This document shows positions 3,088 through 31,532 of a stretch of 64,000 bases of DNA, in pieces. The position numbers were made by a program, and so were the translations under genes. Below the pieces are notes generated by a model that searched no databases, was not told where the DNA came from, and saw only the letters and a list, made by a program, of their open reading frames with translations. The DNA comes from Monocercomonoides exilis PA203 (taxonomy: Eukaryota; Protista; Preaxostyla), in contig LSRY02000003.1 in the NCBI GenBank assembly GCA_001643675.2, positions 1,364,001 to 1,428,000 on the forward strand, read 5' to 3'. Positions within the stretch are counted from its first letter, which is position 1; the number at the start of each line of letters is the position of its first letter.

Positions 3088-6000
3088 TTACTTCATTTCT
3101 TCTTCAAAATAATCATCAAAGTAACCGACGCTCAAGCGATCCTTTCCTCCTTCAAATACCTTCTCAGTTTCCTCAACTACCTGATTTTCTTTCTTCTTTC
3201 TCTTTCTCTTCTCCTTCTTCTCTTTCTTCGTTTTAACCTTTTTCTTCGAGGGTTGTTCTGTGTCAAGTACTGTTAAGTTCCCTACTTCTTCAAAGTCTTT
3301 TGATGCTTCCTTCTCTCTTTTCGCAAAAGCATCACCTAAAAACAAGTTCTGTTCATTATTAGCTCCTTTTTCTGATGCTGCTTTATTGAAAATCTCTTCT
3401 TCTTCACTGATAATGAACTCGTTGCTCATCAATCCCAAGCTTCTATCTGACCCTCTTTCTTCTCCTTCTTCTTCAACTCCGCCAAAAACCTCTTTGTCGA
3501 GTTGATTTTCTGTTGCTTTTTCAAGTTCGTCCAGTTCCCTAAGCTCCTCCTCTCCAAATTCCAGATCTCCATTCAAGAAGAATTCATCAATTATGTCTTG
3601 TAGCGCAACATCTTCCTCAGACTTTTGTTGTTTCTTTTTGTTGCTTGATTTCATCTTTTTATCTTTTTTATCTTTCTTTTCTTTCTTTTCTTTTTTATCT
3701 TTCTTGTCTTTCTTGTCTTTCTTTCTCTTCCTCTTCTTTTCTCCATCTTCTGAAATTGCCTGTGAATTCAATGCCATTCCCCTTAACAATTCATCTTCAT
3801 TATCTTCACCACTCTTTCCAAACACATTCATGTCACCAGAAGCGATATCTTGAGATTCACGATAAGATGTTGTCGCACCCTTGCCATTCATTGAAGTGAC
3901 AGTTGTTATCATCTTTTCATCCAGAAGTTCAGGCGTCTTTGGCGAAGCATTTGGATCACGTTGCGACAATTTTGAAGTAGAAGTCGTTGAATAAGCAGAT
4001 AAATCAGATGGAGATAAGATCGAATTAGAAACAGTAGTTGAATCAACGCTCTTTCCGAGAATCGTATCAAAGTCATCCAAATCAACGCAAAACATCTCTT
4101 TGCTCTGTTTGCTGTTGTCTTCCTCTCCTTCTATTTCATCCAGACCGGATGAATTTGAAGCAGAAGAAGAATTTGTCATTGATAAAGTATTCATCGATGC
4201 CATATTATTGTCAGCTGCTGAATTATGGAAAGCTTTTGAAAGTTTGTTTCCACGTTTTGTTTTCCTTCCTTTTGATTTCTGAGTTGATTTATATGAATCA
4301 GCAGCATTTGATTCTCTATCTTTATTTCCTGAAGTCTGTGAGGCTGTAAATGTCGAAGTAGATAAAATATCAGCAAAGAGATCCGAATGCATTGAATCTG
4401 AAGAGTGATTGAGCATATTTGACTGCTGTGTAATGTCGCTTCCTCTTTCTTGTTCTGTCAGATCATCAAACATGTCACTGCCACGACTTTCATTGAGCAA
4501 TGCAGGTGTTTGTACAAGTGTGAGTGTTTCATCTTCGTCAAATGATGGTTCAGAATTGGATGAAATTGATCTATTGAATGAGCGTCTGATATCTTCTCTT
4601 TCTTCGTCTGCATCTGGACTGTTCGCTAGAGGATTGATAGTGAAAGAACGCTTTCTAGAATTATTAATTGTACTATTGCTTTCAAAAAACTTGTTAGTTG
4701 ACTTCAACGAAGAGATCTTGCGAACACTGTATTCTTTTGATGCAGAAGGAGCATTCATCAACCCAGATGAAGGATTTAACGAGAGCAACGAAGCAGTCGA
4801 GGAAGTACAAGAGCTGTTTGGACTGCTCTTCTTCACTGGAAGCAGTTGGTCTGTGCTGCTAGTGAAATCATTTGAATCAATTCCATTCACAGACGATCCA
4901 TTAGTTACTTCGTCAACCACTTTGACTGGGAGTGTTTCTGAGGAAAGAGTCAAGTTGCAGCTTGCAGCTTTAAAGTCAGCATCGCTTTCATCCAAAGTCA
5001 TTTCTTTCTCCATTTCGTCCTCAGAAGAAATACTGTCAGGTGCTTCGTCTTGTTTGTGCTGCGAATTCTTTTTCTTCTTCTTCGATGTCACAATGACAAT
5101 TACCACAACAACAGAAACCACTCCAACCACAATCAATATGACCCACCAGGGGAATGCTCTTGACTGTGTCTTTTGCTCATTGACGTTGCGGTTTCCATCA
5201 TCAGGAGGCATCACAGGATCAGGTTCTGGCTCAGGTTCAATCACAGGCGGATCAGGAAGTGGAGGCGTGTTTCGTGTGTTCATATAAAAAGCAGTTGTTC
5301 GAAGAACGGTTCCAGAGGGATTCCAAAAACGAAGACATACATAAACATCTTCAACTTGCTTCACCTCTTCATCTTCTTCAACTCTATTATTGATTAAATG
5401 TCTCTTGTTCTTTGCGTGTTGTTTCTGCTTCTCTTTTTCCGCTTCCTCCTTTTCTTGCTCTTCTTTCTTTTTCTTTTCCTCTTCATCCTTCCTCTTCTTT
5501 TCTTCCTCTTCTTCCTCATCTCCCAACACGAGATCAGCATTCAGTACAACTTTAACAGTTGTCGGATCAACAAACTGCGCCACAGCCACATCTGTTGTTC
5601 TGTTCAAGCTTCCATCTTTCAAAATATAGCGCATTTCAGCAGTCACATTGCAAGGAAGAAGTGAAGTTCCTGTGAATGTTACAGTGATGGGCTCTCTTTC
5701 TTCAGTTGAGTCAGTATTCAAAATCTTTGATTTTTCAGTTGTTATCTGTTTTCTATGATTGCGACTTCTTTTGAAGTACGCAGATTTTTGTGCATCAGTC
5801 GAATCTCCTTCAATTTCTGTCGTTTGGTCCTCTTCTTCTTTAACTTCTTCTTCCTGCTCTTCTTCGATAGGCGTGTCTTCAGGTTTATCAGGCGCAATTT
5901 CTGGTTGGTCAGAACGTGTCATCTTTGAGACAGAAGGATGAAAGAGAAATCCTTTTGTGATCGAAGCATCATTATGCAGAGTACAAGAAGCAGAAAGAAT

Positions 6001-9000
6001 CCATAAATGTTCCATTTCCTTTACTTGCTCTTCTTCTTCTTCTTTGCTTTCTTCGCCCCCTTCTGTTGTTCCTTCTGCCTCTCCGCTAACTCGAGAAAGA
6101 ACAAACGGATAATTCTGATTATTAAAAGCAGATTGAGCTTCTGGAGGACTTGGCTTGATTGATGAAAGAATATCTAAATCAGCATTTCCATCGCAAATGA
6201 TATCTTTTCGTGCTTTTGGATACATTTTGCTTTCAATCCCATTTGACTCGAATACAACATCCTTTATAACAACATTTCCGCCTGTTACGCTAAATGCTCC
6301 GGACTCGCAATTACTTAACTGAGAGGCGGAAATATCGCATGAACTGTTAACAACACGAAGAATCGAGCCTTTCCAATCACAGAGAGCGTATATATCTTCT
6401 TCTGCCTCTAATTCAACACTTAATAATGCGTTCTTTGAAATAAGTCCTTTATTATATCCATCGATGAGTTGCTCATTCGATTCCATTGAATGCTTTTGAA
6501 TTGTTAATGCTTCATCCGAAGAAGTTGTTGCATTTCTGATTTCTCCATTGAACACACAATCACTCACTGCTAGAACAGCATTCTCAACATTAAGTGCACA
6601 TCCCAAAGATGATTCAGACACGCATTTTTCCACAATAATTCTCGTAAGTGACGCCTTTCCATGATTTACAGACAAAACACATGGACCGCTTCTTTCCTGG
6701 GTCAATCCCACAAAAATTGAATCTTCCAATTTCAGTGAAAAGTCTTCTTTTGGATGTGCATTCTTCATTGAAATAACTGCTCCATTTGAAAAAGAAATAC
6801 CCGACACATTCAGCTTTTTCAATGAAAAGAGTGCACCTTCTTCCAATGAAAATATAGGAGCATTGAATTCGAAGTTAGTTAGTTGCATGTCTTCAACATC
6901 TAATCGACCTCCAGAAATCAGAATAAGTGAGAAGGAGAACCGATATCTATGAAGATCATTACAGGTAAATGAAGATGAAGTCAATGTCGAATCAAACGGA
7001 TCAATGAATGAGTCTTCATGAAGTATTTCGCATTCAGAGACTTTAAGAGCATCCTTTGCCACATGCAGCAAAGAAGAATGTGAAGGGAAAGAAGAAGGAA
7101 TGCAGAAAATGCAATTATCGATTTCAACGCTCGATTGAACTGTAATCGGAGCTTTTCTGATTCCATTCGCTGGAGAATCAATGAATCGAATAATTCCTTT
7201 CTTTTCAGAAGAATGTTGAGAAGCTGTTGATGGAATTTCGCTGTCAACAGCTTTTCCGTCAATCAAAAACAATCGAGAAATAACGCTTTCACCTTTGAAA
7301 TAGCAGCTTTTGTCAATTGACACTTGCATTTTCGATGGATCCCTTTCAATTGCGTAGTTTAGTGAGTTGCAGGTATAATTCCAGAATCCGCAAGCAGACA
7401 CATCCAATCCTTCAGTTGACGTGTGGATCCAGTTGCTCAGCTCAAGCAAATAGTAACCAAGAGGAATCGCAATGGTGCTGTTGTGCTCGTCAAATCCTTC
7501 AAGTTCGTGTACATTCCATCCGTCAAACACTTTGAAGAAAGTGAGTGTGCTGTAAGTTATTTCCTTTGGTAAATAAAGTCCGTCCACAAACACATTCAAG
7601 CCCAGTTCAGCCGAGCTTGATGTGAAGTTCAAATCTCTCAAACAGAACGAAGCATCCAAATTCTGCGTGTATATTCCAATGCTTCCTCCTTTTCCCTTTG
7701 ATCCTGGCTCAGAAGGAGCGGAGCAGTCGTTAAAAGCACAATTGAATACTTCAATGACTGCAAGATAATTCATCTCAATAAACAAAGCTCCTCCACTCAA
7801 TCCTTCCTGATTGTTGTTTCTGTACCGGCTTTGATCTTTCTGATTGTTTTTGATCGTATTTGAAAGAGCATCATTTGATTTCTTCGAATTCGACGTTGAA
7901 GTTTTCGAAATATGGCAGTCAGTGAATGAGCAATTCTCAATTCTCGATATCAGCTGAGAGTCTGTCTCTCCTCTGTGTTCAATGCAGCTTCCATCTCCAT
8001 TTTGCTTGCTGATTGCTGTGAAAACGCATGAAGATATTGTTGCATTCTTCACGGAACTGAAGCAAATTACAGAAGAAGATGTTGAGCTGATCTGCTCAAA
8101 CTTTGAATTCTTGATGACTGTTGTAGTTTTACATCCAAATTGCATCAAAGGCGAAGAAGAAGTTGATGAAATAGAAGAAACAGCAAGATTTGTCATCGAA
8201 ACAACTGTTTCTTGACCCTGCGAAGAGATGAAACAAGAGTTTGTGAGAAGAATATTTTCGACATTTGCAGAACTCTGACCGATTGCCATAGGTTCCACTA
8301 TAAAATCAGTCACAGAGACTGTTCCGTAAGTAGCATCAAGGAAGCTGAAAGTGATTCTGTTGGAAGATGGAGGAATCAACGAAGATCGCTGGATTGTCAG
8401 TGTTCCTTTTCTGTTATTCATCAAAGTTGAATGACGATTAAGCACTTCAGGAACAACAAAATGAATATCGGTGATTGATGCTATGTTATGATTTTCGATT
8501 ATTCCTTTCATGTTTGAATTTGGCACTGTTTGAGTTATAAAGCATTTGCAGTTGCTTTCGTTTCCTTTCAGAATGAAAGAATCGAAAGAAACATTGAACT
8601 CATTCACCAGAGTGAATGATGAATTAACTGTAACATTCTTATCTTTAACCGACGTCTGTCTCCAAACAGCCCAATGCAGAGTTTTGCAATGATATTCATC
8701 AAATCCGCAAGCAGTTGTATCGACTCCATCGCTTGATACATAAACAGTTTTGTGCTGGTCGAGATTATAATAAACCAGAGGAATAACAGTCCAGTTGTTG
8801 TGTTCATTGTATCCAGAAAGAGAAGAATGATCGAAATAGTAGCAGTCCGGTGGAATTATAGGAATAAAAGGAAGCGAAGAACGAGTTATTGTTTCATTCA
8901 ATTTGTAAGAATCCACAAACATGTCTCTTCCAAATTCTGCTTTGTTTGCTGTTCGCTCATCAGACAGTGGGAAAGCAATCGGAGAAAACAGCCAATCCAA

Positions 9001-12000
9001 ATTGCTATCTATTGCATACACATAAACAGCGCCTCCCTTTCCGGAGCTTCCTTGTGTGTTTGGAACAGCACATGATTCAAATGAAGTGTTTTTCACTTCA
9101 AATCTTGTCTGTTTTCGCAGTCTCGCGTACATTGCGCCTCCAACAGAATTCGATTCGCTCAAAAAGCAGTTGTCAATTGCGTTATTTATTATTATAATTA
9201 GTCTATTATTTACAGAACTTTCAGCTTCTTCGGGTTCATCAAAACAGAATGCAGTACCATTTCCTCCTTTGATGTTGAGGCCACCGAAATGTGAGCAGCT
9301 AACATTTAGTTTATTTGTTCTCCTTGAATACAAAACAGAAGAAGAAGAAAACGAGATTGACATTACAGAAACATTATTCAAAGCCAGTAATTCTGCTTGA
9401 TCCGAAGTTAATATTGGTGTTGAACGAACATAGGAACTTGAAGTCAGCGAACGAATCGATGAAAGCACAGAATTTGTTGTACAAAGAGAAGCTCCATTTT
9501 GAATTTCAACAACTGATTTGTCTCCATCAATTGTTATTTGTTTCAGTGTTAATGAATCGAATGATGCAATAGTCGAAGAACCAGAGAGACTGAAAAGAGA
9601 AGTGAAATTCAGAATATTATCTGATAGATTGGAAAATGAATTTGACGAAGCAAATACAGTGGTTTCTGTTGCAATAAATGTGAACTTGCTAACTTCAACC
9701 TTCCCTGCTGTAACTTTCATAAATGCATTGTTAATTGTTCTGTCTTCAACAGCAACCAATGAGCATGAAGTCAAAGTGAATGAGTTACCAGAAACTGTGA
9801 AAATTGCTTCATGATTAGAAATAAGCTTCGGGACTTTTATCTTTAATTGCTTCAACGTTGTATTTGAATTGCTTTCAAACAATCCATTTTGATTGCTTTC
9901 TTCAACATTCATAATTATCATTTCTGCAATTGATGAATTAGGGGCAGTCAGAACAAACAATTCGTTTGGCACAGAAAATTCATGGCTCAATTCAAATGAC
10001 CCAATTACTGTTACATTACCCTTTTGAGGATTGTTCTGTCTATGAATCGCATAATTCAATGATTCACAATGATAATCGTCAAAGCCACAAGCAGTTGTGT
10101 TGAATCCTTCCGTAGAAATATAAATGGATGTTTCCAACGGAAGCAGATAGAAGCCAAGCGGAATTGATGTCCAGCTGTTGTGCTCATCGTATCCTTCCAT
10201 TGAAGAATGATCGAATCTTCTGTTTAATGGGAAAAATGGAAGACGGGAATGGATAATTGAGTGATTCAACGCTGGCGAAGTCACAAACAAGTCTCTTCCA
10301 AACTTTGCTTTATTCATAAATGAAGACGGATTTACTGGAAAAGTTGGAGTTTCAATTATCCAATCAGCTTCAGAATCTGTTAAGAATAGCAGAATCGCAC
10401 CACCACAACCATTTGCAGAAGCTGCATTTGAAGAAGAAGAAATAGTCGTTGATTCTTCATTCGGCACAGCGCATTCAGAAAATCTGCACCCCTTCAATTG
10501 GACAGATACAGTTCGTCCAAGTGAGGCAAAAATTGCACCTCCGCATGAGGAGTCAAAGATAGATGGAAGAGCGTCGTTGCTTTCCTCAACACTGTTTGTC
10601 TTTCGTGTATTTTTCAATGAAGACAATGCTTCTTCTCCAATCAATCTGCATCTTGTAAAAGAGCAATCACGTAAAGATATTGCTTCTCCTGAATTTGAGC
10701 TAAACTGAGAATCTTCTCCACACTCAATCCAAATCGCCGAGCCTCCTGTTTTTGTTCGTGTTGTGTCTGCAAATGTGCTGTTCGTAAGGTTAAGGAGAAT
10801 GGAATGAATGCTTCGAAGAATGGAAGCGTCTTTAAAGTGTGTTGTGTTAACAACAATAGATTCGATTTCAACAGAACTGCAAGAAGAAGAAGAAATCAAA
10901 GGCGAATAATCATTCGACAATTCAGTCAAAGTGGATTTTTTGAAAAAGAGCTTTGATCTATTTGATACATCAATTGTTGCGTTATTTCCTTTAGAGACAA
11001 CTGAAGTTAAGGAAAAGTTATCGAGAACGGCAGATGCTGTCATTCCGTTGATGGTTAACAGTGAAGTTGAAGATAGAATAGTTTGTTGAGCAGCATCATT
11101 TGTTTGGGCTGCAGATGCTAACATTGATGAAGATGAATTTGTCTTAATCCAATTGGGTGTATTTTGTACAAAGACGCAAGGAGCAATATCAAATGCCTCA
11201 ACATTCAGCTGTCCTCCTTCCACGTAAAACATAGGGTATTTCAGCGTGTGTGAAATCTCAGTTGGAATAAGAGAACAACAAGCAACATTAACAGTTCCGC
11301 TAATCTGTCGCAAAAATGATGAGTGCCTTTCAATTGTTTCAGGCAAGCAGAAATCAATTTTATTAAATAAAGTATTTGTATTGCTGTTCTCAAACACGCC
11401 AGTGAAATCTTCGTTGTTTTGTAAATCACGAACAACAAACTGAGCGTGTCTTTCTTCTTTGCTGGAAATAATCGAAAGATTATAAAATAAATTAGTTCCA
11501 GTCCACAAATCACCAACTCTAAACTGATTCATCAAATACATCGTATCATTTATTGTTACGTGTTTTATGTCGCTCCGCTGTCTCCAAACGGTCCAGGGCA
11601 AAGAATAGCAGTGATATTCATCATATCCGCATGCAGTTGTATCATTTCCGTATGTTGACACATATTGAGTCTGGTGTTGATTGAGCAAATAATATGTTAG
11701 CGGAATATTATATGTTGCATTATGTTCATTGAACCCTTCCATCTCTGAATGATCAAAGTAATAGCTCTGAGGATATACTGGACTTACAAAAGGAAGAGAA
11801 GCATTTGTAATCGTTTGGTTCAAAAACGGAGATGACACAAAAATATTTCGCCCAAGTGTGGCTTGATTTGCGTTTGCTTCAGATTTTGCTGGGAAAGAAG
11901 GTGTCGAAATCATCCAAGAAGCAAGCTGATGATGGAAATGAAGCGAAATAGCACCTCCAAGACCAATTTTTGCATTTGAAGAAACTGGATACGTTTGAGA

Positions 12001-21000: not shown

Positions 21001-24000
21001 ATCTATTGTATAGAAAGCAGAGCCACCACTTCCAGTGGCAGGCGCAATCACCTCGAAATGGCGATCTTCCAAAAGGATGTATCTATCAAATTTAAAATAC
21101 AAATTGTCCAGTTGTATTATTCTTTTCTCAAATGTTGTTTGATGGGTGATTGCACCAGCAACTGTTGCACAGGGAAAATCCTCATATCCACAATTTGTGA
21201 AATCATGCCCTCCATCAAATACGCCAATGTTCTCAATGAAATTATAATCACTTCTGGATCCATTAACATGAACTGTAGGTACTCTTGTACGCAAGAATAT
21301 TTCTAATTCGAGTGGAACAGTTTCATTTCGGAGCTCAAAGCAAATTAATTGATCTTTAGTCTCAAAAGCATTTATCGGAGTGTTTTCTCTGCTTGCTTTG
21401 TATTTAATTGATTGAAATGAACTTTTTTCAGCAATAGACGACATGTTGAACGTATCTATAAACAGAGAATGGCCGAGCCAAGCTTGACAATTTGTAAAGT
21501 CAATATTTTGTAAATCAAATTGTATCGTGTTGGAATATGAATAAATCATCACTCCTCCCCCTCTGCCTCCAAGGTTGTTGGATCTCTTTTTGAGAGATTT
21601 TCCGTTTTGATGTGTATTGTATTTACTTCGATTTGACTCTGAAATTTCATCTTTGTTTGGACTTGCACTTCTAATATTCGGTACAGAACACTCGATAAAA
21701 TTGGTGTTGCTTAGAGCAAAAATGTTGTTAGAAGTGAGCTCGGCATATATTGCACCTCCACAGCTTGCATCCTTTGAAGTTGTACATTGAACGAATGAGC
21801 AGTTATCTATTGAAAGCTGACTTTCCGAATTTTTCTGTTTCTGTTCATTCGACTTCGCCAAGCTTGATGGATTGCAGCCAGCGTTCACAACAGTCCCGTT
21901 TCCGTCTGTTTTCGAGATGTTTTTGAACGATGTCCCGTTCAGTCGAATCAAAGCTGACGCGTTTACAGAATGAATGATTGAAGCCTTTGTGAAATCCAGC
22001 TGTTCAAAATTGGAGTCTTCAAGAAAGACCGTTCCCGCATTTTTGGCATAAATTAAATCTTGAGTAGAATAAGCTGTATTGTTGCACAAAGTTGATGAAA
22101 GTCCAAAGCTTCCCCCATTTTCAGCCAGAAACAGCTTCTCAATATTTGTAAAAATACTGTTGAAATAGCAATCCTTAAAAATAACAGTCGCTCCACTTCC
22201 AACTGAATGGCCAAATGGAAATCCTTTGAATCTCCGATTGCGCCAAGAAAGATCGAATATGGATGCAGTTCCTCCAGTCGCTCTCACAAGCGAATACTCA
22301 AAATTCCACTGTTCATTTGTTTGATGCCCTTCAGAATTTGAACTGGTGTATACTTCACATTCCATTAATGTGTTGTTCACCTTTAATTCTCCGCTTTGGC
22401 ATTCAAAAAATGCAGTGATTCCCTGACCAATGTTCACAGGGAGCTTAAGTGTCATGTTATGAATCAGTGACGTAACATTGTTGATAATATATGCATTCCT
22501 TAAAGTTGGAAGGTTGTTTCCCTCCAATGCAGTCACATTAATAACAGGGTTATCTGGATGCGCTGAAATGTCGTACCGAAAGACGTTCAAATCGGCTATT
22601 TGATAAAACTTAAAGTCTGGCTTCAATATCATAGCAGACGTAACAGTCCTTGGAAACCTCCAGAAAGTACTGCCGTTGATCGTCAAGCAAGGATACGCAA
22701 TGTCTCCACAACCAGAAAAATCTGCACCGTTGTCTTCGCCCACGTAGACAGGCGATTTCAAGTTTCGGAAGAAAATCTCAAGTGGAATCCAGAAGCTGTA
22801 ATTGTGGCTTTCATACCCTGTCATGATGGTTGTGTACAAGGGCTGAAATTCAAACAAAAAGTTTTGGTCGTTCACAAAACGCGATAGATTGTATGCATCA
22901 ACATGAAAATATCGCATGAATTTGTCTGTTGTCGCTTTCAAAGGCGTAAAGGCAAGATCTTTGAATAAAAGATATTTCATTTTGTCGCTTTCATCGTTGA
23001 TGTAGAATGCTCCACTCCCAAGTTCGTTTGAATTCTCAGTTAAAGTTGAGCAGTTATCAAAATTTACCCCGCTCAAGCGCAATCCGTTTGTAGCGCTAAA
23101 ATAAAATGATACTGCAGAGCCGCATCGACACATGTTATCTGAGGTGCAATTAGTGAATGATGAGTTGTCGATCTTTATGTTGTAATATGCAGTTGAAGAA
23201 GATATCCCCTGTTGATTTGCAATGTGAAGTACAGAGCTGCTTTTGAAATTTCGTGTAATGTTTACAAATGATGAAGAATTCACAGAAACGCCAGTACCAC
23301 CAGAAGAAAATAGCAATGCATTGTTATCAAAATTCATGTTCAAAAACGTGGAGTTGTTGATGTTCAATGCACCGTTGCGTGCTTGAAAAGGAGCTGATTC
23401 TGCAGAAGAACTTGTAGTTGGTGTTATGAAATTGAATATGCTAAGGTTGTTGAGTGTGATTGATGATGAAGATGACAAGTCTGAATATGCAAAATGTGCA
23501 TTCACGTTTTTCATCTTCAGCGCAGCGCTGTATACAAAGTTATTCAAAACAAGAGATCCGCCAAATGCTCCAAATAAAGTGTAGCTAACTTCATCGTTGC
23601 TATCAATATTTATTGTGATGCTGTTGAGTGTCAGTTCTCCTTGGTGAGAAGAGAATAAATTTTGCACATTTTTCATTGTACTTTTCACGTCAAAATTAAT
23701 TTCTTGAAGCGTAACATCCTTTTTCGTGTATATATAGCCATCGTATTGGCTTCTAATCGAATTACTGTCGCTGACAATCTCGAAGTGATCTTGACTTTTA
23801 TTCTGCATCACAAAATATTTGCTCACATCCATCACTTCTGTCCCGTCGAACTTGAAGGAAGTCATCAGATGTGCATTGCAGCCAGCTTGCCTGAAGCGAT
23901 AATAGGCAGCGCCGTAAATCGTCCTGCAGGGATAGTCCTCAAACCCGCACATTGTGAAATCATGCGCGTTCTCCCATCCAACAAGCGCAAAATCCCATCG

Positions 24001-27000
24001 GTCGCGCAGATAAAGCATAAGAGGAATCGGGAAAGACGTATTGCCCCGCTCATAGCCCAAGTAGCTCGTAAGGTCTCTAATGTCTGGATTAAACGCAAAA
24101 GACTGCCTGGAAACTAAAAGATACAAATCATTGCTGCTAATAAAAATTTTTGGCCCTCGAAAGGCTGCGCAATCAGCAAAAGAAATGTCGCTAAGCAAGA
24201 AATTTGAAGCATAATTATCGTAAAAGTACAATCCTCCTCCCAGTCCAGAAACCATGTTAACCTTACATGATTTGAATGATGTATTATACACCTTCAAATA
24301 TGACCCACTAGTCATCTGTGAGCAAATTCCTCCTCCGTTTCCATTTGCTCTCAAACATGAGTCAAAAGAACAGCTGGAAACGTTCATGGACGATCCTATC
24401 AAAACAACAGGAGAACTGTTAATTTCTTCCGAAGACGAAAAATTTGAATTTCCGATCTCAACAATACCACCAACCCCTTGAACAATACCAACATCAAGCG
24501 TCATGCATCGATAATCTGTGAATGAGAAGTTATTAATGATAAGCTTCCCCAGTGAGTCGCAAACGAAAGCGGAAGAATTGCTGAATGTCATTCCTTGAAT
24601 CTTGCAGCCAGAAGTGCATTGAAGCGTTCCGTTGGTGATTCTGAAAAGGGTAAACGATGTTGGACTTCCGTCTAAAATGACATCCGTTAATGTTAAAGTG
24701 GCATTTCCTTTGTGGAGCACAATTGCAGATGGAAAATTCATTGAAGATGGGAAACCAAGTTTTGCTTTGGAAATAGAAGTATTGACCGTTATGTTCACCA
24801 ACCCTTGCTCCATTGCTTCGCTGGCGTTCAAGCCAGGAGTTGGAGTTGCAGCCGTGTTGAATGTAACAGAATAGCTGGTGTTTTTTGCAGAAAGTGCGTA
24901 TTTATAATTATCCAAAGTGATTGGATCAAACACAAATAAATCAAGCATTACAATGTTTTTCACAGCGCTGTTCTGAAAGTTTTCAGTGATTGCTCGTTCG
25001 ATCGTATAGCAAGGCGCAACCTCAAAACCACAGCGAATATAATTCGCAGAAATGTCAGAATGTGAGACGTATGCCGGATTTTGCTTGCCAAAGAAATAGA
25101 TTATGAGCGGAATTGCAAGATTTCCTGTGTATGAATTAGTCCCATGCATATAAGTCAATTGCATGTTAATATCATTCTGGAAGTCATACGAAAAAGTGGA
25201 TGTGCTTATCACATCGTACAGCTCAGGCGCTTGTACTGAAACATTCAGCGCTCGAAATGCATTGCACTGGCTGAATGACATGTTTGAAAGAGAGAAAATC
25301 GAATTGCTGGATGTTAATTTAATACCTAATCCTCCTCCCCAGTTTGAGCCAGATACTGAAGCAACAGATTTATTGAACTTTACCTGTCCTCCGCTTCCAA
25401 CAGTGAATTTCCCTCCATCTGGCACGTACACATACACCGATCCTCCCCATCCGCTCAATGCTGAGCAGTTGGTAAAATTAGTGTTCATAATGTTGAGTGA
25501 CTTGCCGCTTGAAATATTACCAAGAATAACTCCTCCATTACATCCTGTTCCGTTTATATTTGTAAAAGAAGAGCTTGAAATATTACAGATTGATCCCTGC
25601 TTCACTTGTATTGTTGGGTTTGTCTTTGTCACAAGTGATGTAAAAGAACAAGATGTTATTGTTGTTGAGCCTCCGGTCAATACTACTCCGCCGTTGCTGT
25701 GCTGAGATGCATCATCCGTTACAGCACAATTGTCAATGATGCTTGTTCCACTTGTAACTTTCATGATCACATCTTGCCCTCTCCACATAATGTTGAACTG
25801 CGAAAGGTTCAACTTTCCTGAACTGCTAACAGTTATCATCGTTCCGTCTGTTTTGAGTGTTGTCATTTTTCCGTGGCCGTTTAGGATAATGTTCTTATCA
25901 CCATTAATATTGATATTACTTTCTATGTATTCGTCATCATCCTGTTGAATGTTGCATCTGCGAGGGGCTCCCCATCTGTCAACAGCATATTTTATTGTTC
26001 TACACTTCCAAGAAACGTTGTAACCGCAATTGCTCCAATCGGCTCCGTTTCCCCCGACTAAAAGTTTATCCGGAGGAAACGGAACATACGAATCATCAAC
26101 ATAGCCACCTGGCCAATTTCCAACTCTAAAAAATACATGAGGAGAATCACTGATTGAAAAGCAACTTTCCCATCTTGTTTTATCGCTCATATGATCTTGC
26201 CACACTTTGTCTACAACAACGTCGTTTGCATGAAAGACCTTCGCAGAATGGCTCAACACATTATTCACAAACCATAGATAACTTAATCTGATATCTGCAG
26301 GATGACTTGGAGATCCAATATAAAATGCTCCAATTTCGTCCTGAGCAGTGCCGTGGATTGCCTCACAGTTGGAAACAGTGATATATCCCGTTGCACTCTG
26401 AAGAGAAAATGCAGAAGCAAATCCCGTTACGGAGCCATTTCGCACACTATTAGCTGAAAAAATTGAATTCGAGCTGGCACCGATAGATTGATAGGAAGAA
26501 TAATAGCCAGCATCATTACGCACGAAAGTACAATTCTGAATTAAATGTACAGAGTTATTGTGGAAAGCAACTCCAGCACCTGCATAATCAGCATGGTTCT
26601 GTGTAAAATTACTGTTCAGACATTTTTTATAACCACCTTCGCGCGCATACAGCCCTCCTCCATGACCTTTCGGTTCATCTCCATACACTGCGCAAGCATT
26701 AAACACGCAATGATCAACTAATATATTAGTATTTTTACACCAAATAGCTCCCCCTCCATTATCTCCACTTGTAGTGCATGATACAAATGCATCGTTTGAA
26801 TATGTTGCACTTCCGCTAGTATGCCTCAAGTGGGTAGAATATGTAGTCTTTGCATTTATGAATGAGGAATTATGAGCCACAAATTCAATAACAGATTCTC
26901 CGCACCCCAAAATTCCTCCAGTAACTGGATTCTGCGCATCCAAAAATTGGATATTCATTAACGTTATATACCTTACGGAATATGGGCAAATACATTCATC

Positions 27001-27711
27001 GACTTCCGAACAAAAACACTGGTTTATAATTGGAGCTTGCTTTTGAATGAGTGGTTGAGTATCAATCGTTGAAGAAGTAATATTAATGAATGAATTATCA
27101 TTTGCCCCCATTTTGTAAAAATCACCTCTTGCAATAAATGGGCCATTTTTAAGATAAAGAATGGAATCAAAGCATGAAGAGCTTATTCCAACAGTTCCAT
27201 TATTTTGAAATTCCACCAAACTTGAACTAATTCTCTCTGCCCGATTATCAAATTTAAGAGAAATATTATTCATCTGAATCGTTCCGTTTGCTGTGATGAA
27301 AGGCGCGAAATTATTCGTGTGAATTGAATATATAACAGAACATAATGAAAATGAAGATAGATCATTCACAAATGCATATGAATTGTTCTCTCCAATTTCT
27401 AATAATAAAGATGAAAGCTCAATAGTTGTATTATGCAAGCGAAATACTTCTTCGCCATTGCTTGATGAAGAATGAATGACTGTCAGTCCTGTTCCTTGAA
27501 TACGAACTTTTTCGTCTTGAAACTTAACAGTTGACGTATGATAAACAAATGAGTCCAGTATGTAACACGTCGAATTTGACTCATTACTATTTATTGAACT
27601 TGAATTCGTTCTTCTAAGTAAATGATGAAGATCCGCTTGAGATTGGGTAAGACTATTGTTTAATACAATAGAACTCACAGCCACAGCAAGGAAAAATATG
27701 TGATATAACAT
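3088..27711 (-). CDS. Giant (8207 aa) single-exon type I surface protein with 15 tandem predicted right-handed beta-helix (pectin-lyase-like/Pmp-like) modules
   Basis: Uninterrupted 24.6-kb ORF. N-terminal signal peptide (MLYHIFFLAVAVSS); recurring GGA(I/L/M) and FxxC motifs; 15 copies of a Cys-pair motif approximating GxDx3CGx5-6Cx(T/S)(I/L)xxA; Pro-rich stalk; TM helix PWWVILIVVGVVSVVVVIVIVT (about 5086-5150) followed by KKKKK; cytoplasmic tail of about 665 aa. Confidence 0.9.
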   Translation of the reverse strand: MLYHIFFLAVAVSSIVLNNSLTQSQADLHHLLRRTNSSSINSNESNSTCYILDSFVYHTSTVKFQDEKVRIQGTGLTVIHSSSSNGEEVFRLHNTTIELSSLLLEIGENNSYAFVNDLSSFSLCSVIYSIHTNNFAPFITANGTIQMNNISLKFDNRAERISSSLVEFQNNGTVGISSSCFDSILYLKNGPFIARGDFYKMGANDNSFINITSSTIDTQPLIQKQAPIINQCFCSEVDECICPYSVRYITLMNIQFLDAQNPVTGGILGCGESVIEFVAHNSSFINAKTTYSTHLRHTSGSATYSNDAFVSCTTSGDNGGGAIWCKNTNILVDHCVFNACAVYGDEPKGHGGGLYAREGGYKKCLNSNFTQNHADYAGAGVAFHNNSVHLIQNCTFVRNDAGYYSSYQSIGASSNSIFSANSVRNGSVTGFASAFSLQSATGYITVSNCEAIHGTAQDEIGAFYIGSPSHPADIRLSYLWFVNNVLSHSAKVFHANDVVVDKVWQDHMSDKTRWESCFSISDSPHVFFRVGNWPGGYVDDSYVPFPPDKLLVGGNGADWSNCGYNVSWKCRTIKYAVDRWGAPRRCNIQQDDDEYIESNININGDKNIILNGHGKMTTLKTDGTMITVSSSGKLNLSQFNIMWRGQDVIMKVTSGTSIIDNCAVTDDASQHSNGGVVLTGGSTTITSCSFTSLVTKTNPTIQVKQGSICNISSSSFTNINGTGCNGGVILGNISSGKSLNIMNTNFTNCSALSGWGGSVYVYVPDGGKFTVGSGGQVKFNKSVASVSGSNWGGGLGIKLTSSNSIFSLSNMSFSQCNAFRALNVSVQAPELYDVISTSTFSYDFQNDINMQLTYMHGTNSYTGNLAIPLIIYFFGKQNPAYVSHSDISANYIRCGFEVAPCYTIERAITENFQNSAVKNIVMLDLFVFDPITLDNYKYALSAKNTSYSVTFNTAATPTPGLNASEAMEQGLVNITVNTSISKAKLGFPSSMNFPSAIVLHKGNATLTLTDVILDGSPTSFTLFRITNGTLQCTSGCKIQGMTFSNSSAFVCDSLGKLIINNFSFTDYRCMTLDVGIVQGVGGIVEIGNSNFSSSEEINSSPVVLIGSSMNVSSCSFDSCLRANGNGGGICSQMTSGSYLKVYNTSFKSCKVNMVSGLGGGLYFYDNYASNFLLSDISFADCAAFRGPKIFISSNDLYLLVSRQSFAFNPDIRDLTSYLGYERGNTSFPIPLMLYLRDRWDFALVGWENAHDFTMCGFEDYPCRTIYGAAYYRFRQAGCNAHLMTSFKFDGTEVMDVSKYFVMQNKSQDHFEIVSDSNSIRSQYDGYIYTKKDVTLQEINFDVKSTMKNVQNLFSSHQGELTLNSITINIDSNDEVSYTLFGAFGGSLVLNNFVYSAALKMKNVNAHFAYSDLSSSSSITLNNLSIFNFITPTTSSSAESAPFQARNGALNINNSTFLNMNFDNNALLFSSGGTGVSVNSSSFVNITRNFKSSSVLHIANQQGISSSTAYYNIKIDNSSFTNCTSDNMCRCGSAVSFYFSATNGLRLSGVNFDNCSTLTENSNELGSGAFYINDESDKMKYLLFKDLAFTPLKATTDKFMRYFHVDAYNLSRFVNDQNFLFEFQPLYTTIMTGYESHNYSFWIPLEIFFRNLKSPVYVGEDNGADFSGCGDIAYPCLTINGSTFWRFPRTVTSAMILKPDFKFYQIADLNVFRYDISAHPDNPVINVTALEGNNLPTLRNAYIINNVTSLIHNMTLKLPVNIGQGITAFFECQSGELKVNNTLMECEVYTSSNSEGHQTNEQWNFEYSLVRATGGTASIFDLSWRNRRFKGFPFGHSVGSGATVIFKDCYFNSIFTNIEKLFLAENGGSFGLSSTLCNNTAYSTQDLIYAKNAGTVFLEDSNFEQLDFTKASIIHSVNASALIRLNGTSFKNISKTDGNGTVVNAGCNPSSLAKSNEQKQKNSESQLSIDNCSFVQCTTSKDASCGGAIYAELTSNNIFALSNTNFIECSVPNIRSASPNKDEISESNRSKYNTHQNGKSLKKRSNNLGGRGGGVMIYSYSNTIQFDLQNIDFTNCQAWLGHSLFIDTFNMSSIAEKSSFQSIKYKASRENTPINAFETKDQLICFELRNETVPLELEIFLRTRVPTVHVNGSRSDYNFIENIGVFDGGHDFTNCGYEDFPCATVAGAITHQTTFEKRIIQLDNLYFKFDRYILLEDRHFEVIAPATGSGGSAFYTIDVTQTATRDAASSVGSSNFALLVVRNETLMHQIVIQFPTQMNLFSTFVRAESNIFKLEDVLLKFSNPSVIPFSLGMSRNGGSFELDVNNFTSLCWSSMPMLQTTGANSVMKLSSVKLDGVIAKNQNGLLFATSGGSLLLNQVAINTISLSESLQYHQIYATDGSSLSIDSSTVSHMSFSSLPFVEVVHAHVAEFLNTKFLNISRNNGNGSVAMLSHEALRDTINDKFTINNCSFEGCSVKGTGNDGGALFVNLNPVFNWELKNSSFTSCYAPVNASIIQQPWNATHIRTFMGKGGAIFLLIPQEDVDFSLSDLTFTSNEADLGKNLFISGKDLIVSLRQHKGRLADWIPDSPTGNWNRYLMEGFDNHDPAVSIPLGYYLLDIKDVIHVDANGFDVTACGFWDFACKDITYASNRLPNNESLTIRINKNVIERSTIQLPEDCSRICLLRENENTPSSLTPDVTTDVDCVILNEIELEVYSITFVLPSITSSSSKAANSPSLSNSKLESIIKQSENYVSLSDCYVVPQSSTQTECIFVSLLSVIKGTADVSNLHIGAPTSSSSSIDANSNAPMKFGSVNLINVVNNGNLNLSSSVLTSASFTDGSLVKSIAGCSIKVSNVNFSSISSESGNGSCLWHLMGTDTPVDSESVINSVFVNSSTFTDCSVKHSRTHGGAMFVQMKQECQWKIVDSKITGCKAPKTNYEDFKDYLDTPLRNPPAWDYYTAQGKGGGIYLYLDHTEADWVVQMRREAMTGNDADYGRNLFVDSASLPISVKRVNLPNFTDSEEDIARDKPLFAGFDEHDNWTHIPIEYYLRNLYGIVFASIKGVDVSACGFLNYRCRSLNHALRRQGLSNRNVTVIENLDVNETISLTYGTANISGNTPQEKLIMRMTSSHTSLIEVLISMTFNSLRLCVDSTLPSMNAMIEVKDNSDITFNRIVFEPNVGEQDWSFMIVSSGSAYLNDFSYSLSNAGFSSESLAGSQSNSNVLSYKRPLISIIGEQSKLRLSQSTISEQIETKSCIVSVQDRGSAEIVSCTIEHHLSEDASFIQSINSRDIVLNSTVFDSMTLSKGNGTIASHVTTSNVINNLKYENCSFKNCHASSTKHQSGGALFIKLKSSDCLTVNKCTFSFCETPVTSAKTYNQSERGSDISKGYTEFGRGGGIYLHMIDADVSFSINDMKNETNKADFGRDIFISSPDLLVTMKQQCIVPHNDILSDQVYPDEEIQMMSGYDNHDDWTHVPLIYYLKTLPEFIFVSDKGINVSSCGFIMYQCKSMPLAFRRQGVDRRKLQVDTDVIVREAISLSSGTLSVKGKNDSIIHSVTFDPSVANSVTSFYNSSITSDLHQLLFIVPSDGTTLQSQFIIDHSDSNVTFENCSAATNDSSPMLKPFVTVRNGKVIFDKFMLKFGEGNNEGKTLIDSASFIIASSQSQISITNSVMEAVKFSGLSSFVNANENASIEIRNCSWNNILSHDSSFLSISSPRRLTISDSQITSVYSSDCNGSVLHLSSIPPIPGNTGSVSLANSSFSNCSVAAPNSQFSYGGGAILATVDSSLTLQFSNLSFAECSVSSTQSERSTCGGAIFLCLESVDAPVTFGADLKFERNAANFGKNIFISSQNLTASITRSRYQFFKCYDELYTQGDWAKKWVWDRNDFMGYDNHNSAEVIPLGYYLMDQQEQIFLSDEGKDVTACGFYDYHCKTFNYAIWRQTKNNVYLSTTRKNVTVNESVTLAEEVVLSEGTMRLRSNRSDDSVPVSSRIVVSPSSSSTSSSLFANAVQDAIIVSSIPSEYFDIEFHVPSLLSAKSSIIHLDDQIHVFVRCGLTYQTPGEGLSFIFIAETRGSLILDDCFIGTPVHSSTSFSSLRKFNEITPKYLFNNGSFIKVSGTSAQAELRNMQVHNTEHGDSSSLVEVIGGASLTLNRDEFESSQMVKSSLIRGNDANNVTVVDTIFHSITTQQKGGSCVKIGDDSIVKTIESYTPHQQLYRHTPTRNTVEAIFSFRNCTFDACASTAASSDGGALQMILKPNPQTSSSQQLLISGCSFIDCTCPTLQSENGKGGAIFLYLDDPLIDWCISTPEFETNKATLGLNLFVSSYKLNESITATRLPFISASEYTFDHSLYQGYNEFNSWKAIPLPFYILPLHQHICIKETGVNSTACGFTDYQCESLHYALYRQNKPTTKEEVAIMERVLLEEEIKLTGKELEVISNKLIDPSAQTLNAQIVVLNGERNELDGIIESTKKALFDSIEFIVPKAIQSHSSVVKVTSGEFLLNRSIITPSDPLLELSCRFISATSGKVIIKSISFASNLILVSSSSAHSFSASNSDNGVGSFLFVEGSSTEGTIDRFSFTQVKCKGRTSVLGIDNGATLSITNSDFSHLTLDENCIVEADNIKSLSISDTNISSLGMKSGSTISVSTNDALTVENCSFSSIKLDTIGGSTIHVKDGTSTHSKRVSNKANASSMDPSSFKRNSNTNLEAVHIASCYFSECAVCESSCTGGAIMITPTNMMDVDIDSCSFSNCVAGSSLFGEASISSTSPENTNAPTRGGAIYFYLVDASANWRINNPTWSSIGEANMNNAQIGRDFFISSANLTHSVQASCLPFFDNVNYDECYYFDQSSLRGYDEHDDWTSIPIGFYLLRQHASIYVSSVGYDTTACGFTMYHCHSLPYALNRQQKTEAFVTVNYTMELTEEFSVSTNSLLITANDTSVNAQFVVVKGTRRTNQGFIQNAKILNYALIDFCVPSTLEDYKSLVYQTNGNISIEHCSLVPMDISGTVTYPIMVVTGGKMNVSDFQMNPTMFAPQLQSLASTYNYNLQMNAHSNEANDLHNITFENTSLLIVEGQTSIVDLSKIMFSNGNINGQIPLISSRNSANLTLKNSTFNKLSLNKASILYSAESARSEVNEVKMEDITLNSASLMKSNNSASLTFRDSEVRNITSESGCGAAMRFYEGTDEENNGKTIKIGNVSFDKCSVTETNTKGGAIYAEFKKGSRWECSNCSFVSCSAPFSQTYPVSSNAKIGLGGAISLHFHHQLASWMISTPSFPAKSEANANQATLGRNIFVSSPFLNQTITNASLPFVSPVYPQSYYFDHSEMEGFNEHNATYNIPLTYYLLNQHQTQYVSTYGNDTTACGYDEYHCYSLPWTVWRQRSDIKHVTINDTMYLMNQFRVGDLWTGTNLFYNLSIISSKEERHAQFVVRDLQNNEDFTGVFENSNTNTLFNKIDFCLPETIERHSSFLRQISGTVNVACCSLIPTEISHTLKYPMFYVEGGQLNVEAFDIAPCVFVQNTPNWIKTNSSSSMLASAAQTNDAAQQTILSSTSLLTINGMTASAVLDNFSLTSVVSKGNNATIDVSNRSKLFFKKSTLTELSNDYSPLISSSSCSSVEIESIVVNTTHFKDASILRSIHSILLNLTNSTFADTTRTKTGGSAIWIECGEDSQFSSNSGEAISLRDCSFTRCRLIGEEALSSLKNTRKTNSVEESNDALPSIFDSSCGGAIFASLGRTVSVQLKGCRFSECAVPNEESTTISSSSNAASANGCGGAILLFLTDSEADWIIETPTFPVNPSSFMNKAKFGRDLFVTSPALNHSIIHSRLPFFPLNRRFDHSSMEGYDEHNSWTSIPLGFYLLPLETSIYISTEGFNTTACGFDDYHCESLNYAIHRQNNPQKGNVTVIGSFELSHEFSVPNELFVLTAPNSSIAEMIIMNVEESNQNGLFESNSNTTLKQLKIKVPKLISNHEAIFTVSGNSFTLTSCSLVAVEDRTINNAFMKVTAGKVEVSKFTFIATETTVFASSNSFSNLSDNILNFTSLFSLSGSSTIASFDSLTLKQITIDGDKSVVEIQNGASLCTTNSVLSSIRSLTSSSYVRSTPILTSDQAELLALNNVSVMSISFSSSSVLYSRRTNKLNVSCSHFGGLNIKGGNGTAFCFDEPEEAESSVNNRLIIIINNAIDNCFLSESNSVGGAMYARLRKQTRFEVKNTSFESCAVPNTQGSSGKGGAVYVYAIDSNLDWLFSPIAFPLSDERTANKAEFGRDMFVDSYKLNETITRSSLPFIPIIPPDCYYFDHSSLSGYNEHNNWTVIPLVYYNLDQHKTVYVSSDGVDTTACGFDEYHCKTLHWAVWRQTSVKDKNVTVNSSFTLVNEFNVSFDSFILKGNESNCKCFITQTVPNSNMKGIIENHNIASITDIHFVVPEVLNRHSTLMNNRKGTLTIQRSSLIPPSSNRITFSFLDATYGTVSVTDFIVEPMAIGQSSANVENILLTNSCFISSQGQETVVSMTNLAVSSISSTSSSPLMQFGCKTTTVIKNSKFEQISSTSSSVICFSSVKNATISSCVFTAISKQNGDGSCIEHRGETDSQLISRIENCSFTDCHISKTSTSNSKKSNDALSNTIKNNQKDQSRYRNNNQEGLSGGALFIEMNYLAVIEVFNCAFNDCSAPSEPGSKGKGGSIGIYTQNLDASFCLRDLNFTSSSAELGLNVFVDGLYLPKEITYSTLTFFKVFDGWNVHELEGFDEHNSTIAIPLGYYLLELSNWIHTSTEGLDVSACGFWNYTCNSLNYAIERDPSKMQVSIDKSCYFKGESVISRLFLIDGKAVDSEIPSTASQHSSEKKGIIRFIDSPANGIRKAPITVQSSVEIDNCIFCIPSSFPSHSSLLHVAKDALKVSECEILHEDSFIDPFDSTLTSSSFTCNDLHRYRFSFSLILISGGRLDVEDMQLTNFEFNAPIFSLEEGALFSLKKLNVSGISFSNGAVISMKNAHPKEDFSLKLEDSIFVGLTQERSGPCVLSVNHGKASLTRIIVEKCVSESSLGCALNVENAVLAVSDCVFNGEIRNATTSSDEALTIQKHSMESNEQLIDGYNKGLISKNALLSVELEAEEDIYALCDWKGSILRVVNSSCDISASQLSNCESGAFSVTGGNVVIKDVVFESNGIESKMYPKARKDIICDGNADLDILSSIKPSPPEAQSAFNNQNYPFVLSRVSGEAEGTTEGGEESKEEEEEQVKEMEHLWILSASCTLHNDASITKGFLFHPSVSKMTRSDQPEIAPDKPEDTPIEEEQEEEVKEEEDQTTEIEGDSTDAQKSAYFKRSRNHRKQITTEKSKILNTDSTEEREPITVTFTGTSLLPCNVTAEMRYILKDGSLNRTTDVAVAQFVDPTTVKVVLNADLVLGDEEEEEEKKRKDEEEKKKKEEQEKEEAEKEKQKQHAKNKRHLINNRVEEDEEVKQVEDVYVCLRFWNPSGTVLRTTAFYMNTRNTPPLPDPPVIEPEPEPDPVMPPDDGNRNVNEQKTQSRAFPWWVILIVVGVVSVVVVIVIVTSKKKKKNSQHKQDEAPDSISSEDEMEKEMTLDESDADFKAASCNLTLSSETLPVKVVDEVTNGSSVNGIDSNDFTSSTDQLLPVKKSSPNSSCTSSTASLLSLNPSSGLMNAPSASKEYSVRKISSLKSTNKFFESNSTINNSRKRSFTINPLANSPDADEEREDIRRSFNRSISSNSEPSFDEDETLTLVQTPALLNESRGSDMFDDLTEQERGSDITQQSNMLNHSSDSMHSDLFADILSTSTFTASQTSGNKDRESNAADSYKSTQKSKGRKTKRGNKLSKAFHNSAADNNMASMNTLSMTNSSSASNSSGLDEIEGEEDNSKQSKEMFCVDLDDFDTILGKSVDSTTVSNSILSPSDLSAYSTTSTSKLSQRDPNASPKTPELLDEKMITTVTSMNGKGATTSYRESQDIASGDMNVFGKSGEDNEDELLRGMALNSQAISEDGEKKRKRKKDKKDKKDKKEKKEKKDKKDKKMKSSNKKKQQKSEEDVALQDIIDEFFLNGDLEFGEEELRELDELEKATENQLDKEVFGGVEEEGEERGSDRSLGLMSNEFIISEEEEIFNKAASEKGANNEQNLFLGDAFAKREKEASKDFEEVGNLTVLDTEQPSKKKVKTKKEKKEKRKRKKKENQVVEETEKVFEGGKDRLSVGYFDDYFEEEMK
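7360..26060 (-). repeat. 15 diverged protein-level tandem modules (about 330-515 aa each) inside the giant ORF
   Basis: CG motifs at about 26027, 25028, 23945, 22706, 21188, 19808, 18509, 17213, 15938, 14543, 13048, 11627, 10085, 8705 and 7388. Most are preceded by NxAxxGxx(I/L)F(I/V)xS and G(F/Y)(D/N)xH(N/D)x4-5IPLxYYL. Confidence 0.85.
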
Positions 27712-27725
27712 CCAATCGTGGCGCT

Positions 27726-27780
27726 AATTCGTAAGATACGAATTTGAAAGATAACCAAATTATTGAATAAATTCGCAAAA
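27726..27780. promoter_or_regulatory. Candidate cis-element cluster upstream of the giant gene
   Basis: Perfect 8-bp inverted repeat AATTCGTA-aga-TACGAATT (27726-27744) plus AATTCGCAAAA (27770-27780), all within 70 nt of the ATG. A similar motif clusters upstream of the peroxiredoxin gene. Confidence 0.3.

Positions 27781-31500: not shown

Positions 31501-31532
<32 letters not shown>

Follow-up and report, generated by a model that had tools for sequence, protein, structure and literature searches.

Introduction

Until now most known examples of the beta-helix fold have been bacterial adhesins, phage tailspikes and enzymes that act on glycans. The Pmps of chlamydiae have an adhesin role (PMC2997323). 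Within the Metamonada, Pmp-type transmembrane (TM) proteins of trichomonads raise adhesion when they are overexpressed (PMC6701047), and in Trypanosoma cruzi the protein DGF-1 is described as a series of 7 'ribs' of ~390 amino acids (aa), with low-confidence linkers, an immunoglobulin (Ig)-like 'hat' and 7-9 TM helices (preprint 10.64898/2026.07.27.741050). The subject of the present analysis is the gene MONOS_5407 of the oxymonad Monocercomonoides exilis PA203, which fills by far the longest open reading frame (ORF) in a 64,000-nucleotide stretch of contig LSRY02000003.1 (assembly GCA_001643675.2, positions 1,364,001 to 1,428,000 of the forward strand). The whole of this stretch is referred to as the window, and positions are counted from its first letter.

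M. exilis is a model mitochondrion-less eukaryote that cannot be grown without bacteria. It lives as a commensal in the gut of the chinchilla, where it feeds on bacteria and relies on the prey that it phagocytoses (PMC12308965). The gene family reported as the largest of the organism is that of the 'protein tyrosine kinases', with 332 genes of which 320 are TKL (PMC6759080), and members of the kinase family overlap 'unclassified repeats' (PMC8767320). MONOS_5407 and its relatives, which appear in print only as 'uncharacterized proteins' or 'tyrosine kinases', are obvious candidates for the interface at which prey or host is recognised. What kind of protein fills so long a frame, and what might a chain of beta-helices do for such a cell? 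The best explanation overall, held here with moderate confidence, is that MONOS_5407 is a transcribed, intron-free gene for a type I beta-helix chain, which would act as a long-reach adhesin or capture receptor.

The gene and its product

The gene occupies window positions 3088-27711 on the minus strand as a single ORF of 8,207 aa, which starts with ATG and has no internal stops according to the ORF listing and translation. At ~38% G+C a chance origin of an 8,207-codon frame is impossible. The same frame carries a stop 5 codons before the ATG at 27711. In NCBI the product is named 'uncharacterized protein MONOS_5407' and has a length of 7,986 aa, since the public model begins at Met147, 146 residues late and with the loss of the signal peptide, and splices out 225 nt in frame (GT..AG) at 17607-17831. 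This interval encodes conserved rungs of module 7 (GNGT, NCSF..C, GGAL and C.F..C) and has a G+C content of 36.9%, close to the 38.7% of the coding sequence (CDS) and far from the mean of 27.6% for introns in the M. exilis genome (PMC8767320). The annotated intron is therefore taken to be false and is probably coding.

The long start is doubly supported, by the 5' extent of the RNA and by the paralogue MONOS_3825 (contig C1), whose ORF of 5,035 aa compares with 4,784 aa as annotated and has similarly lost its N-terminus; the extended ORF aligns with MONOS_5407 from residue 1, with the hydrophobic N-terminus included. The RNA search covered positions 22800-28700, that is the 5' ~5 kb of the gene and the region upstream, in contigs from four metatranscriptome runs of a single study. 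These runs, evidently of M. exilis culture, contain 82-83% of the words sampled from this segment, and their contigs are continuous from 22800 to 27772-27791 with 0 mismatches, gaps or joints. Depth is zero across the upstream intergenic region (27922-28700), and this silence of intergenic DNA argues against DNA carry-over. As the contigs extend 60-80 nt past the ATG on its 5' side and depth is zero further out, the start of the mRNA is placed there. The public gene model is thus corrected, with the signal peptide restored and the probable false intron flagged, and a module profile that Pfam lacks is supplied.

There are only two hydrophobic segments in the entire protein, at aa 1-19 and aa 7522-7544, and the predicted topology is of a signal peptide, an ectodomain, one TM helix and a disordered tail. 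A type I orientation fits, because KKKKK directly follows the TM helix. The mass, estimated from length, is ~900 kDa. Translation, hydrophobicity and profile matches together recover the signal peptide, the GGAI/FxxN head, the 15 modules, the Pro stalk, the single TM helix and the long tail that the initial annotation, made by reading the DNA without database searches, had listed. The membrane-proximal Cys-containing domain of that annotation fared less well, as a region is indeed present at aa 7228-7480 but holds just 3 Cys. This region is conserved mainly in MONOS_3825, two other members giving weak partial matches (E 2e-4 and 9e-4), and a weak TIG/Ig-like lead (score 0.84) is treated as unproven.

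The head is predicted to be a diverged Pmp-like beta-helix that lacks the canonical cap. Its language-model neighbours are Chlam_PMP/Beta_helix clusters (score 0.95), and a piecewise Pfam scan of the head gave no match. Across the ectodomain there are 164 NxS/T sequons against ~121 expected, and the modules are mostly acidic. At the other end of the protein, the extreme C-terminus of the tail (window 3091-3130, aa 8195-8207) contains an FxDxF motif in the form of FDDYF, and six DxF are counted in the tail. These resemble AP-2 appendage-binding motifs, although chance occurrence is possible in so acidic a tail, and AP-2-type uptake is a lead only.

The module and its predicted fold

The greater part of the ectodomain consists of 15 modules that follow each other back-to-back without linkers over aa 545-7227, as defined with a profile built from the repeats, and that vary in length from 318 to 514 aa. 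Thirteen of the 15 are full-length profile matches (domain E 1e-74 to 1e-143) and the cap motif CG[FY]..[YFW].C is found in every one. Module matches inside the window all fall within 6037-25113. A BLAST search of 400-aa fragments against the protein itself gave a repeat period of ~430-510 aa over roughly aa 650-6900, where self-BLAST of the whole protein had returned the identity match only, and pairwise identity among the modules is just 20-45%. The consensus opens with an N-terminal cap, IPL.YYL...V...G.D...CG[FY]..Y.C..L..A, which is followed by long, weakly conserved rungs and then by a C-terminal block of GNG., NCSF..C, GGA., N.SF..C, G.GGAI and F..N.A..G...F. Counted over the protein, GGA[ILV] occurs 17 times, F..N 38 times and F..C 40 times. 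With regard to the pectin-lyase-type N-cap that had been proposed for the modules, a looser cap stands in all 15, whereas the strict form [YF]VS..G.D has just 3 occurrences.

Conservation was read from an alignment of 108 full-length modules, comprising 13 of MONOS_5407 and 95 from relatives. The cap cysteines C26 and C33 are invariant and probably form a cap disulfide. Of the remaining cysteines C354 is conserved in 92%, C290 in 78% and C134 in 70% of the modules. C290 and C354 represent the C of two successive F..C rungs, and because the next rung has F..N at the same place these cysteines sit at the position of the Asn ladder. The replacement of FxxN by FxxC had been read as a disulfide ladder, which the larger alignment does not bear out. 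In 21 modules C354 stands without C290, and in 5 the reverse holds, so that co-occurrence is broken in 26 of the 108; the absent residue is replaced by S, T, V, G or A, and odd Cys counts are frequent. An obligate ladder fits poorly with cysteines that occur singly, are replaced and are often odd in number. Inside the predicted helix the conserved residues are limited to G, C, F, A, L, P and N, with no D, E, K, R or H reaching 60% conservation across the 108 modules, and the only conserved charged residues are D22 of the cap and the C-terminal D432. The lack of a conserved charged residue inside the helix argues against a conserved active site.

An AlphaFold2 model of module 14, made with the 108-module alignment, has a mean pLDDT of 91.2 and a pTM of 0.90. 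It is built almost entirely of short strands, with an S/N/K-rich loop at residues 300-330 that is disordered. Foldseek against the PDB gave marginal matches (E 3e-4, TM-score 0.2-0.46), a common outcome with solenoids, after which an exhaustive structural aligner was used. The PL6 lyase 7o79 then aligned over 311 residues with a root-mean-square deviation of 3.2 A (score 24.9), followed by the A-module of AlgE4 (24.6) and the pneumococcal adhesin PfbA (23.7), with polygalacturonases, phage tailspikes and pertactin-type passengers at 20-24. The best structural matches include PL6 lyases, GH28, GH87, GH110 and phage depolymerases, at sequence identities of 7-12%. Each module is predicted, as the initial annotation had proposed, to be a complete, separately capped right-handed parallel beta-helix. 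A two-module model, of modules 13 and 14 together (899 aa, 58-row alignment), has a pLDDT of 89.7 and a pTM of 0.79, and blocks at the junction score 80-94, which suggests that the junction between modules is defined and not floppy. The ~100 nm reach suggested earlier for the chain holds as a fair upper bound, derived from ~12-13 rungs x 0.48 nm x 16 domains.

How do these modules relate to the beta-helix families already in the databases? No Pfam family scores above threshold on the whole protein (E <= 0.01) or on ten pieces of it (E <= 5), where there are chance low-complexity matches only, and no family of CAZy type is found in either scan. PF02415 comes no closer than E 0.25 on one module, at 12.2 bits against a cut-off of 20.6, and does not match the head. 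PF07602 (DUF1565) has no match at E <= 5 on any module, nor has Beta_helix, and the likeness of the cap to DUF1565 is structural only, with Atlas DUF1565 clusters at TM-scores of 0.55-0.65. The module profiles do, however, reach proteins from bacteria, archaea and metagenomes in which PF13229, PF02415 or both are present (E 1e-21 to 1e-9); in one of these proteins there is an autotransporter barrel as well. When the module profile was compared by hhalign with a PF02415 metagenome protein, 31 columns aligned only. The link to Pmps and DUF1565 that had been drawn from the motifs thus stands as a real but remote Pmp/pectin-lyase kinship, and falls as membership of PF02415 or PF07602. On profile evidence the modules are remote relatives of Pmp-type beta-helices. 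The protein itself is not a Pmp, since barrel and Pfam repeats are both missing and its type I topology is that of a eukaryotic protein; PF03797 has no match in it, and a single TM helix with its cytoplasmic tail serves as the anchor in place of an autotransporter barrel.

Selection and the history of the array

The paralogue MONOS_3825 (C1:1109847-1124954) is in global alignment mostly 80-98% identical to aa 3870-7370 of MONOS_5407, with patches of 52-66% identity and without module 11. A BLAST identity of 53-57% to the same paralogue was set aside as a register artefact, caused by a shift of one module. Over 4,967 aligned codons the Nei-Gojobori method gives a nonsynonymous distance (dN) of 0.19, a synonymous distance (dS) of 0.64 and a dN/dS of 0.30, with a range of 0.04-0.38 in 150-codon windows where dS could be estimated. 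By this measure both genes are under purifying selection along the whole ectodomain. The tail behaves differently, with 27-39% identity between the paralogues. dS is itself a mosaic, of 0.14-0.4 in some tracts and 0.9-1.9 in others, which suggests tracts of gene conversion or recombination between genes that lie on different contigs.

The relationship between individual modules was examined in a FastTree phylogeny of 73 modules, with Shimodaira-Hasegawa-like support and with several long-branch joins flagged. Modules 8, 9, 10, 12, 13, 14 and 15 are each joined to their same-rank counterpart in MONOS_3825 with a support of 100, and for modules 3 and 5 the partner is the module of equal rank in the distant paralogue MONOS_955. 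As modules keep positional identity across paralogues, the array is old and its positions are not interchangeable. The protein BLNAU_15988 of Blattamonas nauphoetae (6570 aa) has identical or near-identical module pairs that are repeated four times; these repeats indicate a recent tandem amplification, unlike the old and diverged array of M. exilis.

A receptor-like beta-helix family in oxymonads

An exhaustive search with the module profile recovered 2,481 proteins with E <= 1e-3, of which 297 have E <= 1e-30; the listing comprises the best 150 of these 2,481 matches. The 20 top matches that were checked come from M. exilis, B. nauphoetae and Streblomastix strix, together with two metagenome proteins. 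In the M. exilis genome (an 82-Mb assembly in which the window lies on contig C25) scored module matches number at least 112, out of 7,796 candidates at first look. MONOS_5407 is exceeded in length by a 16,665-aa open frame with many module matches at ~152087-189001 on contig C36, and further module-bearing frames reach 10,375 aa (C22) and 8,137 aa (C14). The head domain is also shared, being common to the N-termini of ~20 members, including kinase-tailed ones (BLAST, E 3e-15 to 9e-4).

Most members of the family have TM helices; in many the TM helix lies ~440 aa from the C-terminus, and 7 of 10 tails tested match only the C-lobe of PF07714 (E 1e-9 to 1e-14). The kinase-like tails of these relatives (P0006, P0009, P0019, P0024, P0027, P0039 and P0079) lack GxGxxG, VAIK, HRD and DFG and keep RW[KQ]APE, from which motifs they are to be regarded as receptor pseudokinases, unable to phosphorylate. 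At least one kinase-tailed relative bears the NCBI name 'putative protein tyrosine and serine/threonine kinase', and members of the module family appear to be the published M. exilis 'tyrosine kinases'. Neither PF07714 nor PF00069 matches the tails of MONOS_5407, MONOS_3825, MONOS_955 or BLNAU_15988. As judged from these searches, MONOS_5407 is a kinase-less, extra-long member of an oxymonad-specific family of beta-helix receptors. In the literature searched no paper names MONOS_5407, MONOS_3825 or MONOS_955, and there is no description of an oxymonad adhesin or of a beta-helix ectodomain, the family being known as kinases or uncharacterized proteins.

Possible function

The preferred reading can be set out as a sequence of steps. 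The ectodomain of ~7,500 residues would lie outside the cell as a Pmp-like head helix and 15 abutting, capped beta-helix domains, each with its invariant Cys pair, followed by the Pro stalk, one TM helix and a 663-residue disordered tail in the cytoplasm. The semi-rigid chain would project binding surfaces up to ~100 nm from the cell, and its domains would bind polymers, with glycans carried by bacterial prey or gut mucus as the most plausible ligands. MONOS_5407 would then be a long-reach adhesin or capture receptor of a bacterivorous gut flagellate, and the tail may couple the chain to uptake. As M. exilis is a bacterivorous gut commensal, the most economical reading is that the protein would serve to capture or recognise bacteria or to attach the cell to mucus.

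Several points weigh against this reading, and an adhesin function is best termed plausible. The modules have no shared conserved surface residues, and no binding site is identified thereby. The RNA evidence comprises the 5' 5 kb of the gene, as contigs from one study. Both the fold and the junction are predictions, with the geometry of the rod and the cap disulfide deduced in turn. The motif scan of the tail found neither NPx[YF] nor Yxx-phi, which are the motifs seen in trichomonad Pmps. Finally, many relatives keep a conserved pseudokinase tail, which points to signalling over pure adhesion.

This last point leads to the strongest of the alternatives, a possible though fairly improbable one, in which the ectodomain is a sensor that signals through its tail, pairs as a co-receptor with the pseudokinase-tailed relatives or acts as a decoy. 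The head and modules are held in common with relatives whose TM helix is placed ~440 aa from the C-terminus and is followed by the PF07714 C-lobe match, the family has been published as the largest 'tyrosine kinase' family of M. exilis (PMC6759080), and the tail of MONOS_5407 is long and Ser-rich. This tail evolves fast compared with the ectodomain, however, and MONOS_5407, MONOS_3825, MONOS_955 and BLNAU_15988 are all without a kinase-like domain. Even where one is found, the loss of GxGxxG, VAIK, HRD and DFG leaves no phosphorylation to be expected.

Beta-helices are rigid and protease-resistant, and the rods might simply form a glycosylated coat or spacer layer that shields a naked gut cell and has no specific ligand. 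The excess of sequons, the mostly acidic modules and the lack of a conserved binding site would all suit such a coat, which is nevertheless rather unlikely. Modules have kept their position-specific identity since before the split from MONOS_955, under purifying selection, and this fits distinct functions better; RNA depth also gives no sign of coat-level expression, although contigs cannot rank expression.

Less probable by some way is an enzymatic role, in which lyases or hydrolases of polysaccharides, tethered as an array, would digest bacterial or host glycans at the cell surface. The idea draws on the best structural matches, which are PL6, GH28, GH87 and GH110 enzymes and phage depolymerases, but these are matches at very low sequence identity to a fold that is also found in non-enzymatic adhesins, and the 108 modules conserve no charged residue inside the helix, just as the protein has no CAZy-type Pfam match. 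The idea that the gene is an artefact of assembly or annotation, or a repeat array in decay, can be dismissed almost outright, for although repetitive giant genes are prone to misassembly and the family overlaps 'unclassified repeats' (PMC8767320), it is already contradicted by modules too diverged (20-45% identical) for collapse or expansion in assembly, by a frame open for 8,207 codons, by RNA contigs with 0 mismatches and by the dN/dS of 0.30.

Within the adhesin or capture-receptor reading a more specific and speculative version, which is doubtful as it stands, can be put forward. The 16 non-equivalent binding domains, in an order that predates the split of the paralogues, would form a semi-rigid ~100 nm 'fishing rod' that selects bacterial prey, or ectosymbionts in Streblomastix-like relatives, with handover to uptake through the AP-2-type FxDxF/DxF motifs and with gene conversion renewing the specificities. 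If true, the family would represent a class of phagocytic or adhesion receptor that is new among eukaryotes and has no relation to lectin, Ig or leucine-rich-repeat systems. The surface-recognition repertoire of oxymonads would then be built on one scaffold, the capped beta-helix module, with MONOS_5407 as its long-range arm.

Features of the locus and neighbouring genes

Table 1. Features of MONOS_5407 in window coordinates, all on the minus strand.
Feature	Residues	Window position	Strand	Basis
5' untranslated region		27712..27791	-	RNA contigs end 60-80 nt upstream of ATG (27772-27791; 4 runs, 1 study)
Complete CDS of MONOS_5407, uninterrupted	8207 aa + stop	3088..27711	-	ORF; 100% match to NCBI protein outside two annotation differences
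Signal-peptide-like N-terminus, absent from NCBI model	1-20	27652..27711	-	Hydrophobicity; alignment to extended paralogue ORF on C1
Head domain (524 aa), GGAI + FxxN	21-544	26080..27651	-	Weak module-profile match; BLAST to N-terminal heads of ~20 members
Module 1, short	545-862	25126..26079	-	Module profile; cap present
Module 2	867-1228	24028..25113	-	Module profile
Module 3	1229-1641	22789..24027	-	Module profile; pairs with same-rank MONOS_955 module
Module 4	1642-2124	21340..22788	-	Module profile
Module 5	2134-2608	19888..21312	-	Module profile; tree
Module 6	2609-3041	18589..19887	-	Module profile
Module 7, includes stretch spliced out by NCBI model	3042-3473	17293..18588	-	Module profile
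Annotated 225-nt in-frame GT..AG intron, probably coding		17607..17831	-	Conserved module 7 rungs; G+C
Module 8	3474-3898	16018..17292	-	Module profile; tree
Module 9	3899-4363	14623..16017	-	Module profile; tree
Module 10	4364-4861	13129..14622	-	Module profile; tree
Module 11, sole C-terminal module without MONOS_3825 counterpart	4862-5335	11707..13128	-	Module profile; global alignment; tree
Module 12	5336-5849	10165..11706	-	Module profile; tree
Module 13, first half of two-module model	5850-6309	8785..10164	-	Module profile; model
Module 14, modelled singly and used for fold searches	6310-6748	7468..8784	-	Model
Module 15	6749-7227	6031..7467	-	Module profile, E 1e-74
Membrane-proximal region, acidic EK-rich low complexity around short beta-rich stretches	7228-7480	5272..6030	-	
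Pro/Glu-rich stalk	7481-7505	5197..5271	-	
Single TM helix, then KKKKK	7522-7544	5080..5148	-	Kyte-Doolittle 3.48
Cytoplasmic tail (663 aa), S/K/E/D-rich, no domain	7545-8207	3091..5079	-	

The genes adjoining MONOS_5407 are eukaryotic. An ORF at 518-1777 on the plus strand is matched by the calreticulin family model over profile positions 68-200 of 369 only, and a THOC2 homologue with Tho2, Thoc2 and THOC2_N domains is found at 51153-57233 on the minus strand. Four further ORFs of 859-1,191 aa, at 29512-32778 (+), 36525-39287 (-), 42118-44697 (+) and 57440-61015 (-), have no significant Pfam family, and none of the four matches the beta-helix module in the profile search of the organism's own genome. 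G+C is 0.47-0.48 at 54000-60000 and 0.27-0.41 elsewhere in the window.

Comparison with known systems

The nearest relatives are the kinase-tailed oxymonad proteins, with which MONOS_5407 shares the module (profile E to 1e-243), the N-terminal head, the single TM helix and an occurrence that is limited to oxymonads. It differs from them in having no kinase remnant, the place of which is taken by the 663-aa low-complexity tail, and in modules that are longer (mostly 413-514 as against ~390-400 aa) and more numerous (15). The kinase-less giants form a small subgroup, consisting of MONOS_5407, MONOS_3825, MONOS_955 and BLNAU_15988.

GGA[ILV] and FxxN-type rungs on a beta-helix recall the chlamydial Pmps (PF02415), but the rung is mostly FxxC, there is no beta-barrel, and many complete capped domains stand in place of one passenger helix. 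The trichomonad Pmp-like TM proteins, which also belong to a metamonad and combine a Pmp-type beta-helix ectodomain with one TM helix and a cytoplasmic tail (PMC6701047), are by analogy the nearest functional precedent in the Metamonada. These were found by their Pmp domain, the two tested are ~67-68 kDa and their tails often contain NPx[YF], whereas MONOS_5407, at ~900 kDa and with 16 domains, escapes Pfam and is without NPx[YF]. Among prokaryotes, PfbA (4mr0) and the adhesin-like proteins of methanogens (DUF1565/Beta_helix) have one beta-helix plus Ig-like domains.

The nearest architectural analogue appears to be DGF-1 of T. cruzi, which shares a signal peptide, tandem right-handed beta-helix modules with positional identity, a membrane anchor and a large lineage-specific expansion. 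MONOS_5407 is distinguished by its 15 linkerless modules, its head and its one TM helix, and the two organisms belong to different supergroups; the likeness is one of architecture. Taken together with DGF-1, the chain of 16 beta-helix domains predicted on one TM helix suggests that tandem beta-helix rods are a recurrent protist route to very long surface molecules.

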